A stretch of DNA of 64,000 bases from Macrostomum hystrix (lineage: Eukaryota > Animalia > Platyhelminthes), in contig CATNEN010000029.1 of NCBI GenBank assembly GCA_950097015.1, positions 3,472,001 through 3,536,000 on the forward strand. Direction: 5' to 3'. This document shows positions 15,101-18,100 of this stretch, in pieces. The notes beneath the pieces are model-generated. The model was not told where the DNA came from and made no database searches. It was given only the letters and a program-made list of their open reading frames with translations. Within the stretch, counting starts at the first letter, position 1. Each line of letters begins with the position of its first letter. The translations under genes and the position numbers were made by a program.

Positions 15101-18100
15101 CCACCTGTTACACTCAGAAAGCCAAGCGGTTTGTGCACCAGGAAGGGAGAGAGGCTCAGAGTGCAAGCCCTCCCGGATTTCCCATATTTGTACCCGCGCT
15201 TTCCGCCACGCAAAGTAGACTTCAAGCGCACTGGCTGCCTGGAGCCGTAAAATACAAAATCAGAGACGAAAACAGACAACAAACAGGCCAGACCAGACTG
15301 AGGTCCCTGGGGAGCAGAATTTCAAGCTTTGTCGAACAGCTAGCTCTTGGGTTTGCCTGGTCTAAATATATGCGTTGCTATGCGTAGGAAATTGTGCCAA
15401 CTTACTTAGGAAATACGCAGCGGAGCTGCAGCACTAATAGTTCCACTGTACAGCCGTGCCTTCTGTGCCAGTCTGTCTGCTACATCTGTGCCAGTCTGTC
15501 TGCTTCCTGTGTGCCAGTCTGTCTGCTTCCTCCGGGCCAGTCTGTCTGCTACATCTGTGCCAGTCTGTCTGCTACATCTGTGCCAGTCTGTCTGCTACAT
15601 CTGTGCCAATCTGTCTGCTTCCTCTGTGCCAGTCTGTCTGCTTCCTCTGTGCCAGTCTGTCTGCTACATCTGTGCCAGTCTGTCTGCTACATCTGTGCCA
15701 GTCTGTCTGCTTCCTCTGTGCCAGTCTGTCTGCTACATCTATGCCAGTCTGTCTGCTACATCTGTGCCAGTCTGTCTGCTACATCTGTGCCAGTCTGTCT
15801 GCTTTCTCTGCCAGTCTGTCTGCTTTCTCTGCCAGTCTGTCTGCTTTCTCTGCCAGTCTGTCTGCTTTCTCTGCCAGTCTGTCTGCTTTCTCTGCCAGTC
15901 TGTCTGCTTTCTCTGCCAGTCTGTCTGCTTTCTCTGCCAGTCTGTCTGCTTTCTCTGCCAGTCTGTCTGCTTTCTCTGCCAGTCTGTCTGCTTTCTCTGC
16001 CAGTCTGTCTGCTTTCTCTGCCAGTCTGTCTGCTTTCTCTGCCAGTCTGTCTGGTTGCGAATATTCCTTGCATGCAGCTGGTGGTTCATGAGTCACACCC
16101 AGGACTACATAAGATCACTAGACCCTATACCACTGTGGGTCACAGTGGGTCACAGTGGCAACTCTTTAGCTTTTGGCTCGGAAGAAACACAAATAAATTT
16201 AATGCAGGGCAGCATTGCAGCAACCCAGAAAAAGGACCCCGCAGAAATGTGTAATAAAACTCGCTCCGATTCCTGCTGAGCGAACAAATTTTCACTTTAA
16301 TGCTCCGCTTTGCAACAGCATCCGAAATCTGTTTTTGTATCATTTGTTGAATTTTTGCATGAAATTAAAACCCATGATGTTGACCCTACCGTAGATTCTC
16401 TCTCACTTTGCTTGCATTCAACTATTCAGAATGGGCCATATGTACTTTGCTACAGTCCACCTGCCTATTCTACTATCTACGGGACACTTCGTTTCTTAGA
16501 AAGTTAATTAAAAGCAGATTTTCACGGAAAAATTGCTTTCCGGTCCCGTCCTTCTTCTAGTGGTCCTTGGTGAATATATAGTTGGTTACAGATACACGGA
16601 CAGTAGAATAGACAGGCGGACTGTTGCAAAGTAGAAAGTATAAATTTTCCAAGAAACGAAGTATCATGTCATTATTCTTCTAGTGGTCCTTGATATTCAC
16701 TAGCCTGTCTGCCGATCATTCTTTCAAGCCTTTCATTCTCTCCTATATCTGCCAATCTATATCTATACTGCCTCTTAGTTATCTATTTATCTAAAATCTG
16801 ACCGAGAGGTCGGAGTTCGAATCTCAATATAGAGGGAATCGTTTGAGTGATTCAACAGGACACCAAATTCCTCATTTTCGTCACTTTACTCATCTGTTAA
16901 TAGCTCGCACCGGCGGCACACAACGCCTGTGAGGTATGAGTCAGTCCAGGCCCACGGGCTAAGGTCTGCGATGCCTCACACCTGCAGTCGCTTTTTGAGC
17001 AGGCTTGGCAGGAAGGAGCCCTGTGCCTTCGGGTGCAGGAATCCCTCCACGCTGTCCCGTCAGCTGACCCATGGGTACACGTCCCGCGAGTGTTCAAGGC
17101 TGACCCTAGGGTAGCCGGACAGAATGGGCAACAGCGCTGGATGACCCATCCAGGGCCTCCGCCCAAACTGGGTACCTCTAGCCCCGGCTGGAGGGAAAGG
17201 TGTCACCCTTTGACCTCAACAGGGTATGCGGCCAGTCCGCAGCTTTCGTGCACCTGTGCGTGATCAGGTACCTCTGGTTACGGCTCTGAGGGAAAGGTGT
17301 CCCCCTTTGACGTTAACAGGGTACGCAGGTTAACTGCGGGTCTGGCGCTGCTTTGTGCCGCCCTCTAAGGCCCAAGGTCTCGCCGTGCCGAAGGGCGCTT
17401 GGCCGGGGAGTAGTCCGGTCTTTAGCGGCTTCTTTTTATTTCTTTTCTCTATTCATGTGAGTCACCGCTTTCAGCAATGGCTTCTTCTGCCCACTCTTAT
17501 AAAGAAAATGAAACCGGGAACCACCCGGTTGCTCCGGCCGCTTCCAACAGCGCCAATGTCGCCCCATGGGAGGCTACCGGGCCCGCTGCGCCCTGTCTGA
17601 CGGAAGATCTGTCCCCGGACCTCTAGGCATCCGGTCCAAGGGAGCCCGTCACGGCCGTAACCAACGCCGCAACGAGCGGCGTCGGCGGCAGCGTGAAAGG
17701 GTGGCCGCGGTTCGGCAATCCGCGGAGGTGGTGCCTCAAGTGGGCGAAGGAGCGGTTGGGCCGAAAGGAGCCACCGCCACCTTAGCCCCTCGGGAAACCG
17801 CCTCCGCGGGGTCACCACCCGCCGAGCCCACCAGCAACACTAACACCGGCAACGTGGCTGGGCCATCTGGAGCCGCAACACATGCAACGATGGCGAGCGG
17901 GGCCCCGGCCAGCCAACCATCTACCAAGGCCAAGAAGTCCTACGCCTCCAAGGCCAGTGCCATGCTCCAACCCGCGGTCATCGTTTTTGGGGAAGAGCAA
18001 GACCTCACGGCCGAGCAGCTCGACAGTGCCTGGCGCATCATCGACGCTGCGCTCATTGACCAGCTCCTGGCAGGCCGCCCGGTGAGCGTGGTCAAATCGG

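Follow-up and report, generated by a model that had tools for sequence, protein, structure and literature searches.

Very probably, to judge from its sequence, the RNA of a two-ORF long interspersed nuclear element (LINE; ORF, open reading frame) from a Macrostomum-type flatworm begins with a self-cleaving ribozyme of the hepatitis delta virus (HDV) kind, 226 nt in length. These 226 nt lie at positions 16903-17128 of a 64,000-nt stretch of Macrostomum hystrix DNA (assembly GCA_950097015.1, contig CATNEN010000029.1, positions 3,472,001 to 3,536,000 of the forward strand), referred to here as the window and numbered from its first base. They open a defective LINE, which we call E1, and the same ribozyme is found on the opposite strand at the 5′ end of an intact member of the family, E2 (Table 1). 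The assignment is carried by two kinds of observation: diverged relatives keep the helices of the fold through changed bases, and the first base of the ribozyme, G1 (G16903 in E1), is at the same time the boundary at which the element meets unrelated DNA.

Table 1. Ribozyme parts, elements and related features; positions refer to the window, and the two relatives without positions lie on contigs of their own.
Feature	Position	Strand	Description
P1, 5′ strand	16903-16908	+	GCUCGC; pairs with 17086-17091; predicted cleavage site 5′ of G16903
J1/2 insert	16909-17067	+	159 nt; five hairpins predicted, the second (~16928-16980) conserved
P2, 5′ strand	17068-17072	+	CCCAU; pairs with 17124-17128
P3	17073-17075 with 17083-17085	+	GGG/CCC; encloses L3
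L3	17076-17082	+	UACACGU, 7 nt
P1, 3′ strand	17086-17091	+	GCGAGU; partner of 16903-16908
P1.1, 3′ strand	17092-17093	+	GU; can pair with A17077-C17078 of L3
P4 stem-loop region	17094-17119	+	hairpin
J4/2	17120-17123	+	CAGA; candidate catalytic C is C17120, 4 bases before the P2 3′ strand
P2, 3′ strand	17124-17128	+	AUGGG; partner of 17068-17072
Remaining 5′ module common to E2	17129-17321	+	95.5% identity; ~97-nt tandem units from 17171
LINE E1	16903-21815	+	4913 bp, defective; endonuclease and RNase H remnants, no reverse transcriptase match
E1 target-site duplication, 5′ copy	16890-16902	+	13 bp, TCATCTGTTAATA; exact repeat at 21816-21828
E1 target-site duplication, 3′ copy	21816-21828	+	TCATCTGTTAATA
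LINE E2	56310-50081	-	intact; ORF1 611 aa, ORF2 1123 aa
E2 ribozyme	56078-56310	-	same as that of E1; G1 at 56310; alignment and descriptor match
L002 ribozyme			P1 GCCUGC/GCAGGC; J1/2 163 nt; P2 CUCAGA/UCUGAG; P3 GGG/CCC; L3 UCUCCGU; P1.1 CU/AG; P4 stem ~11 bp; J4/2 CUGC
L001 ribozyme			P2 CCCAAA/UUUGGG; P3 GGG/CCC; L3 UUCUCGU; P1 3′ strand (C)GCGAGC; P1.1 U.U plus C-G; P4 8-bp stem; J4/2 CGUG

All helices of an HDV-type double pseudoknot are present in E1, in the canonical order P1, P1.1, P2, P3 and P4. An earlier note on this DNA had assigned coordinates to P1, P2, P3, L3 and P1.1 and had named C17120 as the candidate catalytic base; on re-reading the sequence, every one of these proved correct. 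The first pair of P1 is the wobble G16903.U17091, and a G.U pair occupies the same place in E2. When the 226 nt were folded by minimum energy in an unconstrained fashion, P1, P3 and P4 appeared unprompted. The J1/2 insert reaches a folding energy of -72.3 kcal/mol (z -2.83). A single closing P1.2 helix was sought within it and rejected, as the folds show five hairpins side by side instead.

The boundary of the element coincides with the first base of this fold. As the earlier note had it, E1 starts at G1 right after its 13-bp target-site duplication, which recurs as an exact repeat at the other end of the element and directly adjoins G16903 with no base between. In pairwise alignment, the homology of E1 and E2 begins precisely at G1 and the upstream flanks are unrelated. 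The statement that both elements share the same first base is right for the start of their homology but not for the junction in E2, where five extra C (56315-56311, minus strand) separate the 13-bp duplication (TCAGCAGCTCCCC) from G1; E1 has none. Most likely, these are non-templated bases added during 5′ joining. At their 3′ ends, too, the elements agree, both terminating in ...CTGCAG(C/A)TAAGTCAA(A)GTAAG without poly(A) (in E1, ...CTGCAGCTAAGTCAAAGTAAG). ORF2 of E2 encodes an apurinic/apyrimidinic (AP)-type endonuclease, a reverse transcriptase and an RNase H, and the closest named protein matches are from Macrostomum lignano. No transfer RNA (tRNA) adjoins E1; some stretches are tRNA-like.

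How easily such a fold turns up by chance can be judged with a motif descriptor, which was composed after the sequence had been inspected. It requires G1 to be in a G.U pair, helices of 6-7 bp (P1), 5 bp (P2) and 3 bp (P3), a J1/2 of at most 250 nt, an L3 of 7-8 nt, a 2-bp P1.1, and a C plus 3 nt ahead of the P2 3′ strand. Over both strands of the window (128 kb scanned), this descriptor matched at 16903 (+) and 56310 (-) only, against a background of 0.13 matches per window in 60 dinucleotide shuffles. Given this background and a match that coincides with the very first base of the LINE, a chance hit is very unlikely. One might still suspect a permissive descriptor that happens to fit a GC-rich, structured 5′ untranslated region (UTR): allowing J1/2 up to 250 nt loosens the search, a relaxed version gives several spurious matches in the fetched loci, and Rfam is silent on the window. 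Yet the strict version is rarely matched in shuffled sequence and here picks out the element's own first base, and the homologous positions of two relatives, L002 and L001, retain every helix through changed bases. We give an accidental fit next to no credence.

It is these compensatory changes that, as far as sequence comparison goes, make up the decisive evidence for an HDV-like fold. Protein searches with ORF2 and ORF1 led to both of these diverged relatives, for which DNA is available. The first, L002, is a Logan contig of 6492 nt whose ORF2 is 62% identical to that of E2 and whose first base is the start (G1) of the homologous ribozyme. L001 is a JGI metagenome contig with an ORF1 identity of 49%; its end falls inside J1/2, such that the P1 5′ strand is missing while the 3′ two thirds of the ribozyme are present. 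The ORF1 searches gave L001, another contig of 1286 nt and a Macrostomum UniRef entry that lacks DNA, with the ORF1 of L002 itself as the sole further match. When E1, L002 and L001 are set out in a structure-based layout, 43 of 44 pairs over P1, P1.1, P2 and P3 are standard, compared to 11-23 of 44 when the 3′ partners are slid by 1-3 positions as a control. In L002, two pairs of P1 and both pairs of P1.1 have changed on both sides with pairing kept. P2 adds at least two doubly changed pairs, depending on register, or three if its 5-bp and 6-bp versions are aligned with a gap. P4 folds into a hairpin in all relatives while differing in sequence from one to the next, with energies of -9.5 (E1), -6.9 (E2), -24.5 (L002) and -14.8 kcal/mol (L001). 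Other features stay the same in E1, E2, L002 and L001: P3 is invariant, positions 1 and 6 of L3 are U and G, and a C stands exactly 4 nt ahead of the P2 3′ strand. The L3 U and G are the bases that make a reverse wobble in HDV (PMC3774820).

Public sequencing runs, searched as assembled contigs from organisms coded A, B and C, extend both lines of evidence. In organism C, an abundant and diverged relative has ...CCCAGA followed by GGG on one side and CAGA followed by UCUGGG on the other, which represents a fourth compensating version of P2. A relative in organism B has the L3 sequence UACUUGUU, with U and G conserved, and a P1 3′ strand AUGAGU whose 5′ partner is not visible. As for the boundary, 11 organism A contigs whose upstream parts are mutually unlike (agreement 0.44) all part from the window at precisely 16903, and so does one contig from each of organisms B and C. 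Word depth in organism A climbs from 75.8 in the E1 flank to >14,000 in the bin containing 16903; deeper inside the element it reaches tens or hundreds of thousands. The LINE family is highly repeated. Together, the covariation in relatives and the contig boundaries at G1 in three organisms support the earlier note in its reading of an HDV-like ribozyme.

Two further contigs (L003 and L037) have no 5′ end, and in two distant LINEs with 35-37% ORF2 identity (L035 and L036), no convincing ribozyme was found with the relaxed descriptor, which is itself prone to spurious matches. The layout of L002 deserves mention on its own: the contig starts exactly at G1 and continues for ~525 nt beyond the 3′ end of the element into unrelated sequence (5965-6492), which is what a transcript processed at its 5′ end and read through at its 3′ end would look like.

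Several points weigh against the ribozyme. Rfam gave no match at gathering score over the whole window, and noise only at E values up to 10 in the 281-base stretch 16880-17160, which leaves membership of the class without backing from any curated model. Such silence is to be expected and weighs little, since pseudoknots and a J1/2 of 159 nt lie outside what those models can represent. Next, the pair at the cleavage site departs from the usual G.U, being G-C in L002 and having C in place of U in L001, where the 5′ strand is unseen. The covariation, moreover, draws on three independent lineages (E1/E2, L002 and L001) plus two fragments. Finally, substitutions within the family are not significantly depleted in the core. 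Alignment of E1 with E2 over 16903-17135 confirmed the eight differences that the earlier note had placed outside the core, six of them in J1/2 (16917, 16923, 16945, 16979, 16984 and 17005) and two in P4 (17112-17113). However, J1/2 and P4 together account for 185 of the 233 bases, and all eight would land there by chance with p ~0.16. With contig variants included, one of 19 variable sites falls within the 41 core bases where 3.4 are expected (p ~0.12), this sole variable core site being 17122 in J4/2, from one organism B contig. The core is thus indeed free of differences between E1 and E2, but as an argument for function its sparing loses force, given that it is expected by chance in ~16% of cases.

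The last point of this kind concerns G1 itself, as uniform 5′ ends are equally compatible with a fixed start site. An internal promoter initiating at +1, of the sort found in some insect LINEs, could set the G1 start, in which case the RNA structure would serve protein binding or ribosome entry and no cutting would occur. That the conserved J1/2 hairpin (see below) is kept in sequence and not by covariation makes a binding site or a DNA element conceivable, and L1Tc sets a precedent with promoter and ribozyme in the same bases (PMC3383444). A promoter leaves the compensatory changes at the RNA level unexplained, though, and what is conserved matches the HDV catalytic fold point for point: the double pseudoknot, the L3 U and G, and the C before P2. 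Since the G1 start alone fits promoter and cleavage alike, it is only the conserved catalytic fold that favors cleavage; a promoter in place of a ribozyme appears improbable to us. The argument of the earlier note, by which a shared G1 speaks for a processed 5′ end, accordingly holds by virtue of the fold, while the shared base as such would suit a +1 promoter just as well.

If the ribozyme acts as its fold predicts, the element would be transcribed within a longer transcript begun in upstream sequence. P1, P1.1, P2, P3 and P4 would then form, with the 159-nt J1/2 as a structured peripheral domain, and C17120 in J4/2 would catalyze scission 5′ of G16903, leaving the LINE RNA with a defined 5′-OH end at G1. 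This uncapped RNA may serve both translation and target-primed reverse transcription, and whenever reverse transcription reached the G1 end, the resulting full-length copies would all start at G1. The scheme is modeled on what is established for R2, L1Tc, Baggins and RTE (PMC3774820, PMC3185411, PMC6765202).

For the E1 copy, the picture is a different one. Relative to E2 and L002, ~1.0-1.2 kb are deleted at ~20326-20342, covering the reverse transcriptase core, and the reading frames are broken; on this sequence evidence, E1 is a dead element, unable to retrotranspose on its own. Its ribozyme could therefore be the inert fossil of one that is real for the family, with a sense strand that is probably not transcribed and a core that is unchanged through youth, a view that we find rather likely. 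The locus would fit: an exon-like protein-kinase part (Pfam Pkinase, E 6e-33) lies on the minus strand at 22130-22432, 300 bp downstream of E1, and because E1 is antisense to this exon, host transcription would not yield E1 sense RNA. The absence of core changes among the eight differences, not being significant, fits as well. On the other hand, internally deleted LINEs can be mobilized in trans. Most likely, the E1 ribozyme is intact in sequence and unused at this locus, and its unchanged core reflects the youth of the insertion rather than selection on this copy. In Macrostomum lignano, a UniRef gene model (P0012) that combines a kinase domain with an RNase H domain may represent a LINE fused into a gene model such as the kinase one.

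Within the J1/2 insert, one hairpin stands out. Carrying the motif CCAGGCCCAnGGGCUAAGGUCU, it spans ~16928-16980 in E1, ~56285-56233 in E2 and 22-77 in L002. Its identity between E1/E2 and L002 is 82-84% (84% over 56 nt for E2 versus L002), whereas the coding regions of E2 and L002 remain below this at 65-68%, and it is the sole part of the 5′ UTR that BLAST aligned at the nucleotide level between these two. A consensus fold of J1/2 with L002 contains 52 pairs. On the strength of these sequence comparisons, the conserved part of J1/2 is not freely variable; the probable role of the hairpin is to assist folding or to bind the protein of the element. Metagenomes were also scanned for the conserved motif, and the 31 loci obtained were all dismissed as chance matches with unrelated flanks.

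A second peculiarity is how alike the 5′ ends of E1 and E2 are. The first 419 nt (16903-17321 in E1, 56310-55892 in E2) are 95.5% identical, as opposed to 71-73% in the ORF2 regions, and with respect to its coding region, E1 is nearer to L001 (76-77%), from which its 5′ region is about equally distant (76%). For this reason, the sequences point to a 5′ module that was exchanged or captured between LINE lineages. After the ribozyme, the module continues with tandem repeats of ~97 nt (17171-17326 in E1; 55679-56042 in E2, which has more units). In the organism A contigs, these repeats reach a word depth of up to ~500,000, 5-10 times that of the ribozyme, and the unit must therefore also be present outside full-length elements. 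As a tentative and in our own estimation somewhat doubtful extension, the ribozyme and the UTR repeats (~420 nt) may form a cassette that is mobile between LINE lineages, with the J1/2 hairpin suggesting a second function within the ribozyme, for example, in binding of the element's protein or in ribosome entry. This function is suggested by the fact that no other stretch of the whole element is as well conserved at the nucleotide level as the hairpin when E2 is compared with L002.

Beyond the two LINEs, the window is rich in long minisatellite arrays with many different units and periods of 14 to 42 bp (for instance, at 1151-1634, 12616-13439, 32772-34300, 36529-38000, 56180-57400 and 57835-58992). 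E2 itself sits within a 28-bp minisatellite.

In the details of its L3, the E1 ribozyme comes very close to the mammalian CPEB3 ribozyme, which has a 7-nt L3 of UUCACGU and a GU after P1, where E1 has UACACGU and GU; the U.U plus C-G form of P1.1 in L001 is likewise that of CPEB3. The CPEB3 ribozyme is compact, single-copy and intronic, and lies outside any mobile element.

HDV-like ribozymes at the 5′ ends of LINEs (R2, L1Tc, Baggins and RTE), including ones with large J1/2 domains, are established (PMC3774820, PMC3185411, PMC6765202, PMC4908430). The R2 element of Drosophila (Eickbush and Eickbush 2010; PMC3774820) resembles the present family in that an element without long terminal repeats opens with an HDV-like double pseudoknot, with a predicted cut at the first element base, a long J1/2 and a variable P4. 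The R2 ribozyme cuts at the first base, and some R2 5′ junctions carry non-templated bases (PMC3774820), with which the five extra C of E2 may be compared. The R2 protein, moreover, binds an extension within the R2 ribozyme (PMC6765202). In contrast to R2, which has a single ORF and a restriction-like endonuclease and inserts only into 28S ribosomal DNA, E1 and E2 belong to a family with two ORFs, an AP-type endonuclease plus RNase H, dispersed sites and 13-bp duplications.

Closer in its enzymes is L1Tc of Trypanosoma cruzi, from the Ingi clade, a dispersed LINE with AP endonuclease and RNase H that also has an HDV-like ribozyme at its 5′ end and uses it to free the element from longer transcripts (PMC3185411, PMC3383444). 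At 77 nt, that ribozyme is compact, and it also acts as the Pr77 promoter, whereas the one described here measures 226 nt and has a 159-nt J1/2 domain. For such a domain, the drz-Agam-2 family offers a parallel, with a structured peripheral domain (P1.2) in J1/2 between P1 and P2 that speeds cleavage by bringing the two helices together (PMC4908430). In that family, the domain consists of one helix; in E1 and E2 it comprises five predicted hairpins, of which one is conserved in sequence across diverged lineages.

We found no published report on the flatworm LINE family of E1 and E2; the searchable literature ties flatworm non-LTR (long terminal repeat) elements to twister, hammerhead and R2, not to an HDV-type LINE ribozyme. 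With the present assignment, a dispersed, high-copy, RNase H-bearing flatworm LINE family would join the elements that define the 5′ end of their RNA by an HDV-type ribozyme. We regard this as a real but expected case of a known route by which LINEs give their RNA a precisely trimmed start, and one with an immediate use, as the exact 5′ boundary can now serve the annotation of this repeat family. More interesting than the ribozyme itself are the 5′ module, apparently exchanged between lineages, and the hairpin conserved within J1/2, and the family may provide a natural test case for the role of a J1/2 domain that is very large and in part conserved in sequence.

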